Translations under genes and position numbers: made by a program
Shown here: in pieces, positions 6,501-18,535 of the stretch
Layout: every line of letters starts with the position of its first letter
How positions within the stretch are numbered: position 1 is the stretch's first letter
Assembly: GCA_004431415.1 (NCBI GenBank)
Contig: QPMI01000246.1
Location: 51,295 to 115,294, forward strand
Origin: Cyanophora paradoxa CCMP329
Lineage: Eukaryota > Plantae > Glaucophyta
Direction: 5' to 3'
DNA: 64,000 nucleotides
The notes under the pieces: generated by a model
What the model was told of the DNA's origin: nothing
What the model saw: the letters and a program-made list of their open reading frames with translations, nothing else
Database searches by the model: none

Positions 6501-9500
6501 CCGGTGTCGGATCAGCCGAAGGGTTCAGAGCGCGCTTCGCCCAAGGTGAGGTCTAAAGAGTGGTAGCTTTAATCATCACATAAGGCGTGCACGTGCTTAC
6601 TCGTCATATGCAGCCAACGCCAAGCCATTTTGCGAATCGCTTTTCGACGTACCCAAAACCGCCTCTGGTTTTATTGAGGACGGGTCGGGGACTGGACTGT
6701 ACTACCCCAATACGTTCTGCAGATGGCAAGTGCCCGGCCCATGCCACTTGCACCTGAACTCGGGCGTTGTTACGTTTACTGACCTCGAACTGTTCCGAAT
6801 TCAGGATTATCCGCAAGAATTCGCCAGGCTATCTATGGCTCAAATTTGTGGACGCCGATCTCGCTGAAGGAGACAATATTATGGTCTTTGATCGTGCGTC
6901 CGTTTTTCGCAGTTCTTGGTCTCATGATCAGTTGGTCGTGATCAATAAATCGATCCTGCGAACTTTTTCGCAGTCCCAGACTCTAGCGATTGGGACGCAC
7001 CCGGCAATGATGAAGAGCTCCTGGTTGACGCGTCTTTCTACCGTAACACCACGCAACAAGAGCCGGTCATCGGTTCGAAAGGCGCCCTTCTCGTCGTATT
7101 CGATGCCACGAAGTCCGTCATGAAAAGACCGACGCACCGAGGCTTCAACGCGACCTTCGAAACACGTCCGGTGATTTTAAGCGGTATTCCGAGCGAGAAT
7201 AATACCCCCTCCAGGTCAATACTGCAGCGGCGTCCAACGCGTGATTATCGAGGGCTCCGGATCCGGGGGACTTACTCTAACGGACAAGGGCATCGTTTCT
7301 GCCATCGAAAGTCGGCTCCTCGAAGATTTCTACTTACCCAATTCGAACTGCACTTGGTGCGCTGTACATGGCAATCGGGTACATGGACTCGGTCTGATCA
7401 TGATGCATGCACGTTATAAATAGGATCATTCAAGCTGGAGCGAGTAGCATGGTTTCGCTGACCTTGAAGTTGGACTCGGATTCTATCCGTCTCGAAAGCG
7501 GGGACAGCGTGTCTATCTACGATGGAGCTGGCCATGGCATCAATGGAGCGCGTCTCCTGACATTCGGATCACGCGCACAGCTTCAAGACGATCAGATGTT
7601 GAACGACATTGCGGCACAGCAAAAGCTAATTAATACAGATGCGAATACATTTGAGTATTCAAACGCCACCGGTACCGTGAAAGTTGTGTCGAGTACCAGC
7701 TTCTTGACGGTCGTTTTCCAATCCGATGGCGAGCGAGAGAACAGAGGATTCGCTGGCTTTGTTTTGACCGAAAGTGTGTTTACGCTCAACTTATCATGAC
7801 CATGAAGCCTCGCAAAGCGAGTAGCGCTAGCTTTCTGACTCGAGTTCCTGCGCTTGCAGAGCCAATGGATGCGCCGAAATGCAGACCTTCGTCCACGATC
7901 ACTGCTCTATCTTCAACGATCAACGATGGTTCTGGTGCTGAAATGTACTCCCCAAGATCAGACTGCAGCTGGTGCGGGGAAATAATCTTATTAATGTCAT
8001 CTAAATGGATTCCATCTCATTCTGGAATCTATTCGCATGCGCATTTGCAGGCTCATAAAACCCGATACTCCGCCCGGATCTCGCTTGGGGACGATCTCAG
8101 CCATCTTCTCTTCGTTCGAGTTGTCGGCGTCGAAATCTTCTACCGACAACGTCTGCCTCTACAGCTCGACAGACCCGACGGCTGCGGGAGTCTGTTACAG
8201 TTCGAGGATTCCGCCGAGGATGGACACTCCTTATCTCAGCACCACGGGGCTCATCCTGGTCCGCTTCCGCTCGGGTGATGGATACTCCAGCAGGGGCCCG
8301 GGCTTCGAGTTGAAGTACGACACGGATGTGAATCACTGCAAGCAAGAGACTCGCATATCATTGTCAAAGTCCCAGACCGCGGTTCTACAGAGCAACACCA
8401 TAAACGGAATATTTAGCTATCTTCCTTCAGCGGAATGCCAGTGGTGCGTGAGTGATGCGGTTCAAGAGAAGCTGATAATTATATAAGTAAATGTAATTGC
8501 GCGCATTTCTTAGGATTATTTCGGTCGACCGAGGATCCGTCCTTCGTATCAACATGACGCGACTATTCACGGAGTCCCTTGTAGACAATGTGACTGTGCG
8601 TTCGCCGATGCGCGATTGTGGTTTAAAGCTTAAGCTTCCGGATCCGATCGCGCCAACCACGAGCAGATGACTGAGACACTCTCTGCCGCCATGGCACCAG
8701 TCGCAAACGGTACCGCTCGAAAACTGTCGGCAACTGCGGCCGTGCAGACCACAATTAATCTAGACGCAAAGAGTGGCGTCCTACTTGAACCATTTACCGT
8801 CGTCGCTCGCGGCGGAGATGTATCCGTGCGGTTCAAATCCGATTCGCGTGTACAGGGGTACGGGTGGACTGCCCAGGTCACCGCCGGTAAGCTTGTCCCA
8901 TTGATGTCGCCGTTGGGTTCGAGTTCGCTGCCTTCGATCCTGAATTCCAACCTGGCGCAGTTTCCCCGCCTGTGGATCGTTTATCGCTGATGGACCTTGT
9001 CCGAGTGCCATCAACCTCCATCGTTCTTCGAACCCGCATTAATGCCGAATTCACTTCCTGGACAGATTCAAGTGCGTTTGGAATGTATACGTATTTTCTG
9101 GGATACCATTTCGCTAAATATAAAATGCATTCGCAGATTCGGAGCAGGCCCGACAGGACATCGCAACCAGCGGGGGCGTCGGGGCTTCTCGCGTCCGCAA
9201 TATGGGGGTCGAGAAAGGAAGCGTCGTGCTCATTTCAGAAATAGCGGAAGGGACAACTGGGCAGCTCACTCCTGAAGCGGCAGCTATTCGGCTACAAAAA
9301 ACTGCGGCCGAAGGGCTCCTTCTAATAGCAGGTTTCCGTGTGCTGTCCCTTGATTTCGAGAGAGGAACAGGCAACGAAGGTCCGAGGAGTGCAGAGGGCA
9401 GTGCTGCTGTGGCTGAGCTGCGCGTTCCTGTCGCAGGCACGATCGATGTGAGCCGCGCCGAATTCTTCGGGACGTCGACGTCGACGTCGACGTCGACGCC

Positions 9501-9948
9501 GACATCGCAGCCCCGGGGCGTCGATCCCCAGCCGACCTCGAGCGGTTCGAGCAGCTCGAACATCGCTGCGATCGTCGGAGGCTCCGTGGGCGGCGCGGCG
9601 GTGGCGGCGGTGATCCTCGTCGCCCTCGTCGTCTTCATTCGCCGCCGCCGCGACCAAGCGACGGGCGCAACGAGCTCGAGGGAGCACGCGTCGGGCCCGG
9701 AGGCGCCGGTGCAGGTCCAGAGCGGGGCCATGCCAGCGGCTCATGATCAGCTGCAGCCGCCTCCGCCTGCCCATGTACGCATGGAGGAGGTGGTGATCGC
9801 GGAGGAACCGCATGCGCAGCTTCCAGCTAACGCTGCTTCTAATATTCGAATTCATGCGGCCAATATTAATGGCCAGGCCGCGAACGTTAACGTCACGCCT
9901 GCTCGAGCTCCCGATGTAGCCCAAATTGCGACACTGGAGCTCGCGTAA
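581..9948 (+). CDS. Very large multi-exon type I membrane protein: signal peptide, unassigned N-terminal region, Ig/cadherin-like segment, ~8 CUB-like domains, juxtamembrane module, TM helix, short cytoplasmic tail
   Basis: ATG 581 MRSKVCALELVSRSLVILAVLATVLPSCDA is a signal peptide. CUB hallmarks recur: ISDGSG..Y....C.W.I, IYDG and GF...Y/F (e.g. EISDGSGPLSYSGQTTCTWKI at ~6175, INDGSGAEMYSPRSDCSW at ~7920, VSIYDGAG at ~7510, GFELKY at ~8300). TM IAAIVGGSVGGAAVAAVILVALVVFI-RRRR at ~9560-9650; stop 9946-9948. Continuity across 3500-4600 is inferred. Confidence 0.75.
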
Positions 9949-10312: not shown

Positions 10313-12059
10313 TTGCAGCATGCAGTTGGCCATGGGCTGTGCGTGGCGTCGGCGGCGGGGGTGGGGTGCGCAGAGTGCACGGTTGCATTTGGAGCAGGCG
10401 TCGAGGAGGAAGTCGATTCGGCGACAGGCAAATACATCCCAGGGGTCAGTATGACTGCGAATCTGGACACCGAATTCTCAGCATGGAACGCAAGCCAAGA
10501 GAACGTGTGGGCATCTGGAAAGTAATAAAAACCGGAGACAGGCCAGTAAACGGGCCTGACGACCGGTACAGTCCCATCAGGGTGTCCGTTACAGGCAGCA
10601 GGGTAGCCTCGCGAAGGGGTCGATCAGCAAAGGCCGCCACGCCTGTTGCAGTAACGTTTTCGTTGCTGCAGAATTCGAATGAACCCGGTTCGCCAATCCG
10701 CGCAGCAGCGGTGCTCGATACCGACCAATGCAATGTGCAAGCAGGTATGTGTCCGACTGAGGCGGCGGCACTTCTGAAGAGCCGGTCTGCACTTCTGAAT
10801 TCTGAAGATCACGGGCCTGCAGCAGAAATCCTTCATTTACGCCGGTGTGCATGCTTGCGTGCACTCTGTGTTAATTCATGATCATTTGTAATAACTCACA
10901 ATCGAGGGGCAGGTGTGGTCATGATCACGAGCCCCGGCGGAGGCAACACCAACGCCAACGAACACGCGTGCGCCATCTGGAAAACTCGCTGCGACGCAGT
11001 CATTGCCTGGGAACAGGAGCACGGCATCACGTCAGGCAAAAAGCGCACTAAGCGGGCCAACACCGACGCCCGCTCAGGCCTCGGCCATGCCGGCCCCGGC
11101 ACCAATATTAATTCCTCTCAACCCGACTACCCGATGCCCCTCGCTCGACCGTCCACAAGTCACGGTCACGGAGTACATCGGCGGGGCAGCTCCCGCCCTG
11201 GAAGCCGAGTTGGCGGCGCTCACTTGGAGGAAACCGGCAAAGGCACCCGGTCAGCACCCAGCTCAGCAGCAGGACAGCCAGCCCCCCCGCCGCAGCGCCC
11301 GCCTCCGCGAAATAGAAGCGCGACGCCCTCGCTGCGACACCTGCAGGGCAAGCTTTGCCTCCACCCGCCTGTGCCTACGTCACCTGGCCACGGGCCTCTG
11401 CTTCGATGCCGTGCCAGGCTCACTGCTAGAGGACCGGCGCATATTATGTTCTGGAGGTGACTCGGTAGACTACAGCTAAAGCACCAGCTCGACACGACTA
11501 GTAGCTGTAGCACTCTTGTCATATATCTCCTCCTGCAGTCAGCATCAGCATCCCAGTATCCGGTAGGCGAGGAGCGGGGGACTGTTGTCAAGTGTGTACG
11601 AATGCATGCGCAGCAGACTTTCCAAAAAAAGGCAACACCAACGCTAACTCTGGCTCCCCCTCGAGGCTCGAGCTCCTCCTCCGGGTCCTCAGTCTCCGCC
11701 GGCGCCATCGCAGGCGGAGTCGTCGGCGGTGTCGCGGGGCTCGCCCTCGTCGCCGGCGGCATCTTCCTGTACCTCCGGCGCGGCCGCAGGCGCGAGGCCG
11801 CGGCCACTGCCGGCGCGCTTCCGTCCTACGGCAGTTCCATGCGGACCGCATGCCGAGGAGGTCCGCATGCGGCCCGAAGACGGCCCCGGCGGCGGACAAC
11901 GCGAATTCGAAGCCGGCGTCCGCGTGGGAGGCCGTCCAGCAGCAGCAGCCCGGAGCCGGAGCCGGGCCCGTGGCGACGTCCCACGTGTACGTGGCGATCG
12001 ACGAGGACGGGCGTGATCGCGATCGCGAGCCGGCGGGCAGAGGCCACCTCGTCATCTAA
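10313..12059 (+). pseudogene. Fragmentary, probably degraded paralog of the type I membrane protein family (juxtamembrane module, TM, tail)
   Basis: TM SAGAIAGGVVGGVAGLALVAGGIFLYL-RRGRRR at ~11695-11790 resembles the upstream gene. The plausible tail (PKTAPAADNANSKP...GHLVI*) is in another frame with no usable intron between. No clear signal peptide; interrupted by foreign sequence at ~10915-11480. Confidence 0.45.
10915..11479 (+). mobile_element. Probable 5'-truncated non-LTR retrotransposon (LINE) 3' fragment
   Basis: IWKTRCDAVIAWEQEHGITSGKKR resembles the IWKxRC...WE...GIT C-terminal motif of some LINE ORF2 proteins (recalled, not searched). A CDTC-x12-H-x5-C zinc-finger-like segment follows in a shifted frame. 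The stretch is intron-free, unlike its neighbours. No target-site duplication or polyA identified. Confidence 0.4.
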
Positions 12060-12762
12060 TTCGATGAAACTCCATCGAATGGTCCATTCGCGTTTTTCTC
12101 TTCGTCATTACTAGTACTAGTTAGCATTATCCGGGTTTCACATCAACGGATCCGGATTAGGATCAGAAGTTCAGACTCAACTCTGCATGTCTATGACCGC
12201 ATGCGCACGATCATCGGATTAATTATATTGAGTATGACCTCACGTTCTTGCAATTCAGCTCAACCGATTAGGATCAGAATTAAATATTCAGACTCATAGA
12301 GTGCTTGCTTCACGCATATATAGCGTATATACGAAGAGCAATTGCGACATATATTGCTCCAGCGTTCGAGTCCCGGGATCCGGAAGGGCAGTTGGTGGGG
12401 GCCTTGCGCTTTTATAACTGCCTTTAAAAGCACTTCAGACGTGCTCAGTAGTAGTTCCGCGCCAATTGTTAAATTTGCTGTGCTCCGCTAGAATTTCGGC
12501 TGGACTTGTATGGCGGCGTAGGCGTATAATTAAAAGTGGAGTCCACCAACGACACAGGCGGCCGGGCGGGGTACCTTCCCCCTTCTGGAATGATGTCTAA
12601 ACCCCATCATTCCATTCAATTCTGGAATGCTGGAATCAAATGCAATTTAATTTGGGTCTGGGACGCAGTAATATATGTACTACGGTAACAGCCTGGCAGA
12701 TCTAGCTATAGAATGCTGAGAAACTGAGCTATAGAATCGTGATCGCCGATTGCTCATAACGC

Positions 12763-15700
12763 TCAACCGCCGGCGCCCAGCTGGGCGTCGAGGAGGGCGC
12801 GGCGGGCGGCGGCGAGCTCGAGGGCGCCCTGGAGGCCCTCGAGCTCGAGCTCCGAGCGGCGGCGGGCCGCCCGCGCCGCCTCCGCGCGCCGCGCCGCCGC
12901 CGCGAGCTCGCCCGACAGGGCCGCCACGTCCGCCTCCAGCCGCGCCATCCGCTCCTCGGCGGGGCGGATCCCCCGCGTGAACAGCTGGTAGTACTTCTCC
13001 ATCGCCCGAAGGTACCTCACGACCTGCGCGCGCGCTCGTGCTCGAAGCCCGAGCCTGAGGCCTAGGGGCGGCGGGGGGCCGGAGGCCTTGGCCTAGGCCT
13101 GGGCCGGGCACCTTGACGGCGACGGAGGAGACGGCGGCTAGCCGCGCCTCGTCGAGCTCCGGGTCCGCGAGGTACACTTTCGCGAGGCGCTCCATCGCCG
13201 CCCCGGGCACCGCGCTGCGCATGCATATGCGCCCGGCCGGCCGGTGCATTCCTTCCTCAGCACGGGCCGCCGCTGCAAACAGAAATTTAAAGGGGTCGCA
13301 CCGGGGGTTGAAGCCGTGAAGGGCGGCGAGGAGCCGGGGCCAGCCGTCGCGCCCCCCCCAGAGCTCGCGCTTGAAGAGGGCGTAGGCGGCGTCCGCGTCG
13401 AGCCGCGCCGCGCCGGGCCGCAGGAGCGTCGCCAGTGCCGCCCCCGCTTTGCGCACGCCGGCCGGCGGGCTCGCCAGCGCGACGATCTCCGCCTGCGGGG
13501 GGGCGTCGGGGGGATCCGCGGCCGCGCCGGCGCCGGCGCCGGGGGCCGGGCGCACGAATCCGCCGCGCTCGGCGGGGGTGATGGACGCGGCGTCGGCCTT
13601 GGCGCCGCGCTCCATCGGCTCGTAGGTCGCCAGCTGCTCCCGTACCTTCGCTCGCGCCCGCGTGAGTGCCGGCGGCTTCGAATTCGGCTCGAGCGGGCCG
13701 ACCCGGCCCGCGCGGCCCGCTCGCACCTGCGCCTTCAGGGCCTCTATCTCGCCGCGCCGCGCCTCGAGGACCCTGGCGCCCGCCTCCAGCTGCTCCAGCA
13801 GGCCCTCGATCTGCCCCCCCGGCCGCCCGCGCCGCCAGCGTTGGGCGCAGAAGTGTGCGCGAACGGGCCGGCGGGGTACACCGGTCCCGGCCACTCGGGC
13901 CCCGTACCTGCCGCATCGTCTCCTCCGCAGCCACCCGCTTCCCCTCCGTCGCCCGCACCACCGCCTCGGCCTGCGCTTCGATCTTAGCTTTGGCTCCAGG
14001 GGCGGCGCCGGCGCGGGCGGCGGGGGACGAGGGCGGGGGCGGGGGCGGCGCACGAGGGTCTGCAGCTCGGCCCGCACGCGCGGCACAAGGGGCGCCATCT
14101 CCGGCACGGCCCCCATCGCCCCAGGCACCTCGCTCAGCCGCCGCAGGTTCGGCACCCGCGCAGCGCCGGCGGCCCCGCCCGCCCCGCCGCCGCCGCCGCC
14201 GCCGCCGCCCCCGCGTCGCCGCCGTCGCCGCCGCCGGACCCCTCGAGCCAGAGGGGCTGCGGTGCGAGGCCGCGGTCCGGGTACTTGCCGTGCGCGATCT
14301 CTGCCGCCCGCGCCCGCCGTCAGCTCGCCATCGATGTCGAGGCGACCCAGCGCGGGGCCCGGTCGCGCGCCGAGGAAGTACTCAGCGATGGCGCGGCCGC
14401 AGCGGGCGCGGGCGGCGGCGTCCGGCAGGTAGCGCGCGGCGGCCGCCTCCCAGAACTGGCGGTGGTACCAGAAGAGCGTTGCCTCGCCGTCCGCCCCGCG
14501 CGCCACGAGATACTCCCCCAGCGCGAACCTGCGCCAAGGCAAGGAAGGAAGGGAGGATGCAAGAGGGGAAAGGAAGGAATCGAAGGCGGACCGGAAGAGG
14601 GCGGTGACGAAGGGCGGGAGGCGGCGGCGGGGCGGGCGGTGGAAGCGGAGGACCTCTTCCAGCACCTCCTCGTCCCTGCGCGCGCCTCCTAGGAGCTTAG
14701 ACCGGGGCCGAGGCCGAGGCCGAGGCAGCCGCGCCGGGGCCGGGGCCGGGGACGGGGCCGGGGCGCGCGTGGAGAGGATGTCTTCGAGCTCGCCCTCGCT
14801 CAGGCCGCGAGCCGAGGCGGTGATGAGGCCCAGCGCCCGCGACACCAGCGTCACGCCCAGCGCCCCTGCACGCGCACGCGCCCGGGCCCGCCGCTCGCGA
14901 TCGCGATCGGAGATCGCGATCGATCGCAGGGCTCGGGATCGATCGATCGCGGACCCTCGAGGCGGGCGAAGGAGGCGGCGATGAGGCCCGGGACGCTCGC
15001 GGAGAGGCCGAGCGCCGGGGGCGGCTGCCCGCTCGCGAGGCGCTCGCATTCCTCGGCCAGCAGGCGTAGGTGCAGCGCCGTGCCGGGGGCGCCGGGCCCC
15101 GCGCGCGGCGAGGAGCGCGGCGCGCTGCGGCGGCTGCAGCGCGCGCCGCGCCCGCCGCAGGAAGCCATCCAGGATCGCCTCCGTGTCCTCCTTCCTGCGG
15201 CTTCCTGGACACGGAGGCCCTAGGCCTCCGCCTCACACCCAAGCGCCCGGCGCACACGGAGGATCGCCGTGTCCTCCTTCCTTCGCGCCCGTCCAGGATC
15301 GCCTCCGTGTCCTCGCGCCCCAGCGGCTCCAGCTGCGCGAGCGCCGGGCGCTTGGGTGTGAGGCGGAGGCCTAGGGCAGGCGCGGCGCGGGGCGATCGCG
15401 AGCCTCGAAGAAGTCCGAAGGGGCGAGGGCGGGGCAGGCGGCCAGGGACGGGAGGCAGCCGTGGTCGGGCTCGGGCAGCGTGGAGACGAGGACGGAGACG
15501 TGGGGGACGGGGTCGAGGGGCAGCCAGGCGGCGCAGGCGGCGCGGGCGCCGCCCTCGTCCTCTAGCTGGTCCAGCGAGTCGATGAAGACGTGCAGGGGCC
15601 GCTCCGCCGAGGCGTGCTGCGCGAGGCTGCAGGCGCGCGGACTTAAGCGAACTTGAGCTCGCAGAAAGCTTGAGGGCGCACCGGGCGCGGAGCTCCTCGC

Positions 15701-18065
15701 GGAGGGCGGTCAGCTCGTTGGCGGCCTCGGGCGGGTCGGCCCCCCCGGCCGCGTCGAGCTGGAGCGAGAGGCTGCGGAGCAGCGCGCGGGCCGAGGAGGA
15801 GGCCGGCGTCGTCCCGCAGAAGCGCGCCAGCACGAGGCCGCCGCCGCCGCCGCCGCCCGCGCCCGCGCGGCACGCGCCGCTCGCGTCGGCCGCGAGGCGC
15901 GCGACGAGGGACGTCTTGCCCGCCCCCGAGCGGCCCGCGAGGACCGTGACGCAGCCGCCCCGCGCCCGCGCCCGCAGTGCCTCGTGCAGCGCGCCGCGCC
16001 CGCGGAAGTCGTCCGCCCGCCGCGCCGCAAAGAGCGCGTGCGCCGCCGCCTCCGCCCTGCGCGCGCGGTCGAGCCGGCGCCGCACGATCGCGAGCGGCCG
16101 CGCGCGAGCGGCGCGTACTCGACGGGGAGGAGGGCCGCCGGCCGGCGAGCGCCTCGCGGGCGGCCTGCAAGCAGGCCCCCTCCAGGAACTCGCCCAGCTC
16201 GCGCAGGTAGGCCGCGTGCTCGGGCACGTCGGCCCGCACGCCCCCTGCGCCCGCGCCCGCACCGGAGGACGAGTCGGACCCCAAGCGCGGGGCCGGCTCC
16301 TGGGGGCCCGGGGGGCGGACCCGGGAGCCAGGGTACGGCGAACTTCATGAGGCGGCCGGGCGGGGCGGCGGCCTCGGCCTCCGCGAGGAGCGCCCCCAGC
16401 AGGCGGCGGTCCTCCTCCTCCGCCGAGAAGAAGGCGCCGTCCGAGGCCGCGGCCGGCCTCGCGCCGACGTCGACGCCCGTGAAGCGGCGCAGGAGGACGG
16501 CGCAGGAGGCGGCGCGCTCGGCGGCGGGGCGGGCCAGGAGCCCCTCGACGACCTCGAGCTCCGTGATGGACGCGACGTACCGCCGGCGCGCCTCCGCCGG
16601 AAGGCCCGACCGCGCCACAGCCCCCCGCAGCGCCGCCTGCAGCCGCTCCTGCGCGCCGAGGGTCGGGCCGGGTCGGGGCGGGCCGGGTCGGGTCGGGGCG
16701 GGGCGGGGCGGGGCGGGGCGGACCTGAGCGCCGCCGGGGCCCCAGAAGGGCTCCCCGACGCTCGAGATGGGCTGCAGCACGTACTCCACCGGCACCGCGT
16801 TCTCGTCCCTGCGGCCGGCGGGGTCGGCGGGGGCGGGAGGGGGGGAAGCTTGAGGGGCGGGAGGGGCGGAGTGGGGCCGGGCACCGGCGGTACCAGCGCG
16901 CGAGCAGCTCGAGCTCGTCCTTGCGCTCCACGAGCGCGAGCAGCGCCTCCATCTCCTCGGCGTCGACGGCCTTGGGCAGGGCCCGCCTGCACCCGACGGC
17001 CGGCCGCGCGCGCGCCGCGGCCGCCGCCTTCGATTCGGGGCGGAGGCCTAGGCCTAGCTATAGGGGCGCGAGGGCGCGCGCGGGCGGACCAGCCGTAGCG
17101 CTCAGCGCCGAAGTAGACGAACGAGAGGCCGACGCTCTCGTCCACGCAGCGCCGCATCTCGCGGCGGCACACGTCCCACGCGTCGTGGTTGTCCGTTCCC
17201 GTGTCCGCCACGCCCCAGCGCCTGCCGTCTGCCGTCGGGCGCAGCGGCGGCTTCGGCGGCGCCGGTGCGCGCATGCGCACAGGTCGACGACCGAGAAGCC
17301 CAGGCCCAAGTCACGGAGGGCGCGCCGCAGCCGCGGGAAGACGTGCTCCATTAGATAGTTCCTCTCCTGCGGGGCCGGGGTCGGGGTCAGGCCGGCGCCG
17401 GCAGGCCGGGGGCGCGGCGGGCCGGGGCGCGCGGCGGCCGTGTCTGCGAAAGTAGACGAGAGGAAGAGCGCCGTCCTGCGGTGCCCCTCGTCTTTCGCCG
17501 CTGCGAAGTCGCCCCGCAGCACCGCCCGCACGCGCTCCGCCTCGCGCGCGCCCATCTCCGCTGCGGCGTCCTCCGGCGGAACTATAGCTAGCGCTGAGGC
17601 CGGGGCTGGGCCAGCTCCCGCTGCAGCTGCGACGTCTACCCGAAGCTGCACAGCCACAGGCGCCGCCGGAATACGCGTGGGCTCCGCGGCCGCTGCGACC
17701 AACGCGTGATCAGGACGCTCCACCGCGGGAATTCGAATACGAGACGGCGAGGCGCCGGCTGGCGCGGCCGCCCCAGTTGATCGAGCGGATGCGCTGCCAG
17801 CTGCAGGAACCATGTCAGCATGCGCGTTTGATGCAACTGCAGTCGCAGCGCCGCGCGGACGCCCCAACGAGTTGCCCGCGACGGCCAAGCCCGCGGCCGC
17901 GGGAGATGCGCCTCCACGATTCTGGATCGGACCGGCTGCTGCTGGTCGGACCGGCGACTTCGACTGCCGACGGATGCGGCTCGCAGAGCTCGCGTCTGCT
18001 GCAGCTGCAGGTGGAGCTGCCCGGCCGCGGGGTCCCGGGCCACGACGGAGCACCGATCCCCGCAT
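12763..18065 (-). CDS. DUF4062-NACHT/AAA_16 STAND NTPase (NWD1/NWD2/TEP1-like) with a C-terminal dynein-stalk/microtubule-binding-domain-like region
   Basis: DUF4062: LFLSSTFADTAA|ERNYLMEHVFPRLR, VDL|RWGV, CRREMRRC, ERYGW. Walker A GRSGAGKTS; RFCGTTPASS; Walker B LHVFIDSLDQL. Winged helix ARGLSEGELEDILS and LFWYHRQFWEAA. C-terminus IVALASPPAGVRKAG...LHGFNP...VYLADPELDEARLAAVSSVAVK|VVRYLRAMEKYY...RPAEERMARLEA; stop 12763-12765. Start codon uncertain. Confidence 0.88.
15217..15377. repeat. 37-bp perfect inverted repeat plus local direct duplications inside the NACHT gene
   Basis: 15217-15253 gccctaggcctccgcctcacacccaagcgcccggcgc is the reverse complement of 15341-15377. tccaggatcgcctccgtgtcctc occurs at ~15168 and ~15292. 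Confidence 0.9.
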
Positions 18066-18535
18066 CGATGTGATTGATCGTCAACAACGCATGAGAGCTC
18101 TGGAGACGAAATCCACGCTGCCGGCTGCAGCGCGGGCTGGCCTGATCCGGGATCCAATCGATATCCGGAACTTGTCCTTCTGGTCCGTGCCAAACTTCCG
18201 GACGTCCTCTTAAGCTGCTCTTGCAGCCTGTTGCAAGTTGCAAGTGCTGAATCTCGCGTTCAGTTGCAGGCTGCCGGCGTGCCGCTGCCGGCCCGCCGGC
18301 TTCTCTCGAGCTCGGAGGCCGAGGTCCCAAGTCGACACTGTACCCTCGCCTCTCTTCTGAACCATTTCGGCCTTACTCCGGGCGTCCAAGATCTGGATAA
18401 CGCGCCGCCCGCCGCGCCTCTGGCAATTCGGAAAGCTGTTTAAGTCCGAACCAGAGATCAAATTTGCCCGCGTCAACCCCTCCGGACCCGGGTACGGCCT
18501 TCTTGCGGGCTTCAATCTCGATCAGCAGCTAGGAG

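Follow-up and report, generated by a model that had tools for sequence, protein, structure and literature searches.

According to two preprints of 2026, the DUF4062 domain is a TIR-like NADase, renamed NIR, which operates in systems against phages as well as in human TEP1. Oligomerisation activates it, its function depends on E1008, and in eukaryotes it is mostly N-terminal in NLR-like proteins (10.64898/2026.05.01.722283; 10.64898/2026.09.04.749371). The dynein stalk, which bears the microtubule-binding domain (MTBD) at its tip, is known as a part of a motor, and our literature searches yielded no description of it in a signalling or defence enzyme. Registry control in dynein requires both ends of the stalk to be fixed, both helices being anchored in the AAA ring.

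Here we describe a gene of the flagellated glaucophyte Cyanophora paradoxa CCMP329 in which components of the two systems are joined. The window is a stretch of 64,000 nucleotides (GenBank assembly GCA_004431415.1, contig QPMI01000246.1, positions 51,295–115,294 of the forward strand), and all coordinates below are counted from its first letter. The locus is annotated as two genes, both in EukProt: tig00001041_g6560.t1 (778 residues; g6560 below), the DUF4062-NACHT-winged helix half, and tig00001041_g6559.t1 (284 residues; g6559), the dynein stalk half. With the NACHT exon as the query, one protein, g6560, was matched at 100% identity; g6559 was retrieved with the MTBD stretch, and each of the two forms a single-member cluster. 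RNA contigs put the MTBD on one transcript with the end of the STAND core. The domain fusion is real, transcribed and apparently undescribed, and it is known from one genome.

Domains of the two halves

The domains and motifs are as follows, CC1 and CC2 being the two coiled-coil helices of the stalk.

16540–17555, minus strand: start codon and DUF4062/NIR TIR-like NADase domain, exons 1–6, residues 1–212 (Pfam DUF4062, TEP1 11gz, 418 homologues)
16553–16555, minus strand: Glu208, predicted catalytic, equivalent of TEP1 E1008 (108/108 homologues; TEP1 alignment)
15909–15935, minus strand: Walker A of the NACHT/STAND NTPase, intact (Pfam and homologue alignment)
15566–15589, minus strand: Walker B, both aspartates intact (D467 in 107/108 homologues, D470 in 105/108)
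14420–15000, minus strand: NWD1-like winged helix, exons 11–14 (Pfam HTH_NWD1, PF25469, E 4.6e-10)
14120–14155, minus strand: post-winged-helix motif of the DUF4062-NACHT family (best six-frame site; adjoins the pre-break motif in homologue P0004)
13592–14116, minus strand: stalk helix CC1, exons 15–18, kink proline at 13616–13618 (DNAH12/DNAH7 alignment; 3.5-residue periodicity; helix in the model)
13021–13591, minus strand: dynein-type MTBD, helices H1–H6, exons 18–21 (Pfam MT; PDB 6rza; Foldseek; 3wuq)
12763–13020, minus strand: stalk helix CC2, proline at 12961–12963, free C-terminus, stop codon at 12763–12765 (alignment; model; periodicity)

Comparisons at the level of profiles, pairwise alignments, language-model neighbours and structures all support homology of the g6559 half to the dynein stalk and MTBD. 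The Pfam MT family (PF12777) matches g6559 with 26.5 bits (E 4.2e-6), over the cut-off of 24, and its trimmed 176-residue piece with 23.5 bits (E 3.3e-5). The first 17 phmmer matches in the PDB are all dynein heavy chains, the best being DNAH12 (E 1.5e-7, residues 23–270 of 284), followed by DNAH7; the match of the MTBD to 6rza has E 2.3e-6, and the identity to dyneins is roughly 20–25%. The language-model neighbours of g6559 in the ESM Atlas are MT clusters (0.95 and 0.92). In a single-sequence AlphaFold2 model, g6559 forms an extended antiparallel hairpin whose tip is helical (pLDDT 76, at the tip 52–77), and a Foldseek search with this model yields dyneins in all of the first 22 rows (best E 9e-4). 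When VIA superposed the model on 3wuq, a stalk structure, 193 of 221 residues aligned (Z 10.7, root mean square deviation 4.5), the aligned length being far above that in other rows, while the Z-score alone ties with unrelated coiled coils and so does not discriminate; the wide VIA search and the Atlas shape search returned generic coiled coils. In the Pfam, PDB, Atlas and fold searches the MT match was absent for the intron-containing genomic frame and for single exons, the signal being too weak in pieces, and was seen only with the spliced g6559.

Tubulin contacts of the dynein MTBD are located in H1, H3 and H6 (PMC6629372; PMC4298687). All six helices of the domain and both stalk prolines (Pro80 and Pro219) are kept here, with insertions, relative to DNAH12 and DNAH7, of three residues before H1 and one residue before the CC2 proline. 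The contact residues are kept in part: the H1 glutamate position we take to be Glu102, and the H3 pair may be read as Lys141-Arg142, the alignment around the flap being ambiguous. Tethering to microtubules through the stalk is plausible. Neither an AAA ring nor any other dynein-like stretch was found in the window. The absence of the ring had been stated in the first-pass annotation, made from the letters of the DNA, which had also recognised the order of the stalk elements and their likeness to the dynein heavy chain; both profile and structure agree with it. The stalk, however, begins near 14116, and not at ~13660 as in the extent of ~13660–12763 given there.

The top ESM Atlas neighbour of g6559 is a eukaryotic cluster of 324 residues with 83 members, most commonly from the Haptophyta, 25% with PF12777; possibly, it comprises other stand-alone or fused dynein stalks, or else dynein fragments. 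The "MTBD-like" region of TTLL11 was rejected as a relative, being unrelated to dynein.

The N-terminal half, g6560, yields Pfam matches to AAA_16 (E 4.6e-11) and NACHT (E 6e-6), and a DUF4062 match at residues 31–118 (E 4.7e-5) whose score of 23.9 bits is 0.8 bit below the cut-off of 24.7. Its sole PDB match is the TIR-like domain of TEP1 (11gz, E 1.9e-6), and PADLOC gave a P-loop match only. The homologue search took in proteins of at most 1,361 residues, so that most eukaryotic NWD proteins were left out; it found 418 homologues, with PF13271 in nearly all of the listed ones. Residue conservation was derived from 108 aligned homologues, and architecture from 119 listed ones. One numbering offset places R908, R954 and E1008 correctly on the 11gz chain. 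E1008 aligns to Glu208, though this second aligned stretch alone is not significant; the equivalent of R976 is kept as Arg111, and the columns of R908 and R954 vary among the homologues. At otherwise invariant or near-invariant NIR positions there are substitutions, for instance Ala109. We consider it somewhat more likely than not that the NIR domain has NADase activity. The first-pass annotation did not recognise DUF4062 as a TIR-like NADase effector, and with this assignment the protein gains a specific predicted output.

DUF4062, NACHT and the winged helix are all present on the minus strand, as proposed earlier, but the core is not quite complete: in relatives the winged helix is succeeded by a helical domain of about 70 residues, of which only the first helix is left here. 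Past the winged helix only the first motif of this domain was found, the block profile giving no further match. Pfam detects no WD40, TPR or LRR repeats in either half, and the gene ends at 12763.

Gene structure and continuity across frame breaks

The following features refer to the transcript ends and to the assembly.

17556–18333, minus strand: 5' untranslated region (RNA contigs X1-7 and X2-19 unspliced throughout; without coding signal; annotation begins at 17555)
16119–16130, minus strand: frame break 1, one base short, in a C run (probable assembly slip, inferred)
15095–15105, minus strand: frame break 2, two bases short (RNA contig X3-22 supplies the missing bases)
14170–14240, minus strand: frame break 3, one base short, in a G/GGC run (annotation splits the gene here)
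12664–12762, minus strand: 3' untranslated region (RNA contigs X1-1 and X2-16 terminate at 12664–12670)

The three frame breaks (near 16120, near 15100 and at 14170–14240), of which the first-pass annotation made no mention, need +1, +2 and +1 bases, respectively, and all fall within stretches of 81–84% GC. The annotation bypasses breaks 1 and 2 by false introns and stops at break 3. We interpret them as assembly slips because RNA contig X3-22 corrects break 2, because PacBio bases were retained in the C. paradoxa assembly where Illumina coverage was zero (PMC6704402), and because family motif and codon signal continue beyond break 3, the exon with the motif sharing RNA contigs with the MTBD. 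At break 2, X3-22 has 197 letters over 195 bases, its two gaps being the amount needed (at a depth of only 2.6); for breaks 1 and 3 the slip is inferred. The 12-residue post-winged-helix motif has its best ungapped score among 99,771 six-frame sites at 14155, 15.5 bits versus 2.8 for the next site. This position is beyond break 3, upstream of Met 14116 of g6559 and in the frame of the stalk. In homologue P0004 the motif directly follows the one that here precedes break 3. The codon usage between the G/GGC run and Met 14116 favours the stalk frame, the exon with the post-winged-helix motif and the MTBD exons occur on the same spliced RNA contigs. A block profile that spanned break 3 had no significant match. 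Taken together, it is very probable that g6560 and g6559 are one gene with a single open frame, as the first-pass annotation had assumed; RNA contigs join the end of the STAND core to the MTBD, and transcripts separating the NACHT and stalk exons were not seen.

The gene was mapped as 21 exons on the minus strand, from 17555 to 12763, with 20 introns of 55–103 nucleotides, GT-AG in 16 cases and GC-AG in four. The GC content at third codon positions (GC3) is 0.88–0.98 in every exon. As contigs of runs X1–X3 skip introns and those of X11 keep them, X1–X3 were treated, on this behaviour, as RNA; these contigs carry neither strand nor expression level. The distance between the pieces of X2 record 19 is 86 nucleotides, exactly the length of exon 2. 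X2 record 17 joins 14169–14053 to 13491–13302 with 237 nucleotides between them, that is, exons 16, 17 and 18 (63+84+90), and X1 record 1 joins 13302–13491 to the last exon over 105 nucleotides, again an exact match. These exact lengths put the end of exon 18 at 13556; the initial proposal had it four codons too early. The start codon is Met 17555, and not 18065 as suggested earlier, because, in contrast to the exons, the stretch 18065–17556 shows no sign of coding, with GC3 at 0.59 and negative codon scores (-64 and -48). The predicted product is of about 1,071–1,092 residues, dependent on the donor of intron 10 that is used.

Intron 10 has several in-frame donors, at 15318, 15288 and 15255. 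Within 15165–15377, introns 9 and 10 share a 45-nucleotide inverted repeat (93%) flanking exon 10, and 26 nucleotides of exon 11 are duplicated at 15289–15314. A sign of intron 3 retention is RNA contig X2-19, which extends into it (17047–17090). The unspliced 5' leader, of at least 780 nucleotides (17556–18333), contains four upstream ATG codons, two of them in the frame of the gene with no intervening stop. Downstream of the gene, the plus-strand open reading frames 9202–9948 and 11602–12114 have predicted products that look like single-pass membrane proteins, with a hydrophobic segment, a cluster of basic residues and a stretch rich in Ser/Thr.

Proposed function and alternative explanations

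We read the product as one protein, NIR NADase-NACHT STAND-winged helix-dynein stalk, that acts as an NLR-like NADase switch placed on, or triggered at, microtubules; this reading is tentative, its chances being close to even. The CC1-MTBD-CC2 stalk would take the place where a WD40 or TPR sensor usually is. By analogy with STAND and NIR proteins, the protein at rest would be an inactive monomer, nucleotide exchange would lead to oligomerisation, and clustering, in turn, to NAD+ hydrolysis or ADP-ribose signalling. The stalk tip would bind microtubules, probably with low affinity, be it in the flagellar axoneme, in roots or in cortical arrays; the stalk would either position the switch there or couple its activation to microtubule occupancy, for example through concentration of copies on the lattice or release upon microtubule damage. 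It is possible, if rather unlikely, that the dynein stalk has been reused as the sensor of an NLR-like NADase with which the alga monitors its microtubules or axoneme, or an attack on dynein by an intruder, and answers via NAD+ consumption or an ADP-ribose signal, the registry of the stalk possibly serving as a relay.

Several observations weigh against a microtubule-linked NADase switch. For human NWD1, NWD2 and NPHP3, tests of NADase activity were negative (10.64898/2026.05.01.722283; 10.64898/2026.09.04.749371), and two of the three TEP1 active-site arginines are lost here, R908 being Ala and R954 being Asp. The basic residues of DNAH12 in H1 and H6 are replaced by Val and Ala, although real dyneins also vary at these positions (Gln or Asn), and the tip is only mildly basic, with 14 K/R versus 11 D/E (net +3). 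Intron 10 is retained in RNA contigs, X1-3 and X2-18 being unspliced through 15151–15332, and its splicing may be slow and could limit the full-length protein. None of the listed contigs bridges 14170–14240, a run that was skipped as a repeat in the matching. Finally, no orthologue was found, so conservation lends no support.

An integrated decoy is the main alternative and would need no microtubule binding: the stalk and MTBD would mimic dynein as bait for a factor of a virus or parasite, or for a host partner that binds the MTBD, and binding would trigger the NADase. The stalk occupies the sensor position, its sequence has diverged to ~20–25% identity with the fold kept, and some of the basic contact residues are lost; a precedent is provided by plant NLRs that carry integrated domains (PMC4759884). 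However, one would expect a decoy to stay close in sequence to its present target, and no C. paradoxa dynein was retrieved as a close relative. Moreover, no pathogen or effector is known and no repeat sensor remains, and we regard a decoy as unlikely. Less likely again is a non-catalytic scaffold or relaxed graft, with NIR inactive, as in NWD1 and NWD2, and/or the stalk being merely a coiled-coil arm. The inactivity of NWD1, NWD2 and NPHP3 in vitro, the NIR substitutions such as Ala109, and the insertions before H1 (three residues) and before the CC2 proline (one) would fit it, whereas, despite the deep divergence, the catalytic Glu and the two Walker motifs are still in place, and so are every helix of the MTBD and the two prolines.

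It is improbable that the breaks are real and that the locus consists of two genes, or of a decaying pseudogene, with g6560 ending at the GGC run and g6559 being a stalk-only protein from Met 14116. The published models are indeed split, the assembly has three breaks with break 3 not bridged, and the ESM Atlas contains MT-domain clusters of stalk length, which may themselves be fragments of dyneins. But both the family motif and a coding signal in the frame of the stalk are found upstream of Met 14116, and there is no space for a promoter or an intergenic gap; break 2 is corrected by RNA, all breaks fall in 81–84% GC, and PacBio bases were kept without Illumina coverage (PMC6704402). There is no in-frame stop elsewhere, and GC3 is 0.88–0.98. 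The least probable of the explanations is dynein-like allosteric coupling, in which the nucleotide state of the STAND core slides CC1 against CC2 and switches the affinity for microtubules, binding feeding back on the NTPase. Both helices are nearly full length with their prolines kept, and CC1 continues straight from the helix after the winged helix. Still, only CC1 is attached: CC2 is a free C-terminus, with no AAA4/AAA5 or buttress holding it, and for the coupling to work the STAND core would have to hold CC2. The CC1/CC2 registry coupling suggested in the first-pass annotation is therefore doubtful.

Origin, distribution and comparison with known systems

In relatives, the protein extends for at least ~70 residues past the post-winged-helix motif as a helical domain, in many cases followed by WD40 or TPR repeats. 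Here the motif is followed by ~20 residues, then by a phase-0 intron (14053–13971), then by the coiled coil. Introns 15–18 and 20 are of phase 0, which is compatible with exon shuffling. Neither phmmer nor the cluster look-up retrieved a close dynein parent, C. paradoxa's own dyneins included; hence the stalk graft is old or fast-evolving. On the other hand, its splicing, its codon bias and its intact structure argue for selection.

Not one of the NIR part's 119 listed homologues has PF12777 or any resemblance to g6559. A word-indexed search with the MTBD stretch among proteins of 434–1,380 residues gave no orthologue, and phmmer against 1.84 billion representatives returned only the product of this gene, the query including two translated introns, which lowers the sensitivity. 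No orthologue was found in metagenome and viral contigs. Our literature searches gave no example of a dynein stalk in a NACHT or NIR protein, in agreement with the earlier impression of an architecture not described before.

The named top homologues of the NIR part, in the search among proteins of at most 1,361 residues, are prokaryotic. A horizontal origin from bacteria was considered and is not claimed, as most eukaryotic NWD proteins, being longer, were excluded from that search. The best-scoring homologue (DUF4062-NACHT-WD40; L001 6001–9672) lies between leucine and tryptophan biosynthesis genes on a contig of bacterial type, with no obvious defence island. About one third of the homologues with a locatable motif end ~70 residues past it, and another third ~135–145 residues past it, with no repeat sensor; this is apparently a sensor-less, prokaryotic DUF4062-NACHT class.

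We know of no activator of the eukaryotic NIR proteins TEP1 and NWD1/2. The sensor here is a small domain that has been studied well and whose ligand is known, so that activation of a eukaryotic NIR-STAND protein becomes directly testable with microtubules, and the protein offers a test of signal transmission by a stalk outside the AAA ring. Proteome-level surveys miss the fusion because the reference annotation splits the gene.

Among described proteins, the closest are the NIR/DUF4062-NACHT STANDs, that is, TEP1, NWD1, NWD2 and NPHP3, the prokaryotic DUF4062-NACHT-WD40/TPR proteins, and Avs2 with DUF4062. The C. paradoxa protein shares with them the N-terminal DUF4062 with the catalytic Glu, the intact Walker A and B motifs, the NWD1-type winged helix and the post-winged-helix motif at the usual place, but it lacks a WD40, TPR or LRR sensor and has a shortened helical domain followed by the dynein stalk. 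This stalk resembles that of the dynein heavy chains, best of all those of the inner-arm DNAH7/DNAH12/DNAH3 class, and also the cytoplasmic dynein structures, in the CC1-H1..H6-CC2 order, both kink prolines, motif spacing and predicted fold. Unlike a dynein heavy chain, the protein has no tail, linker, six-AAA ring or buttress, the end of CC2 is free, and it is not a motor. The effector-STAND-sensor layout with a host-derived graft is similar to that of plant NLRs with integrated domains and of APAF-1-like STAND switches; unlike these, the protein belongs to the NACHT/NWD lineage rather than to NB-ARC-LRR, its graft replaces the repeat sensor, and it is not known to be linked to a pathogen. 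The protein is thus a variant of the NIR-NACHT STAND kind, and neither an NWD protein proper nor a dynein.

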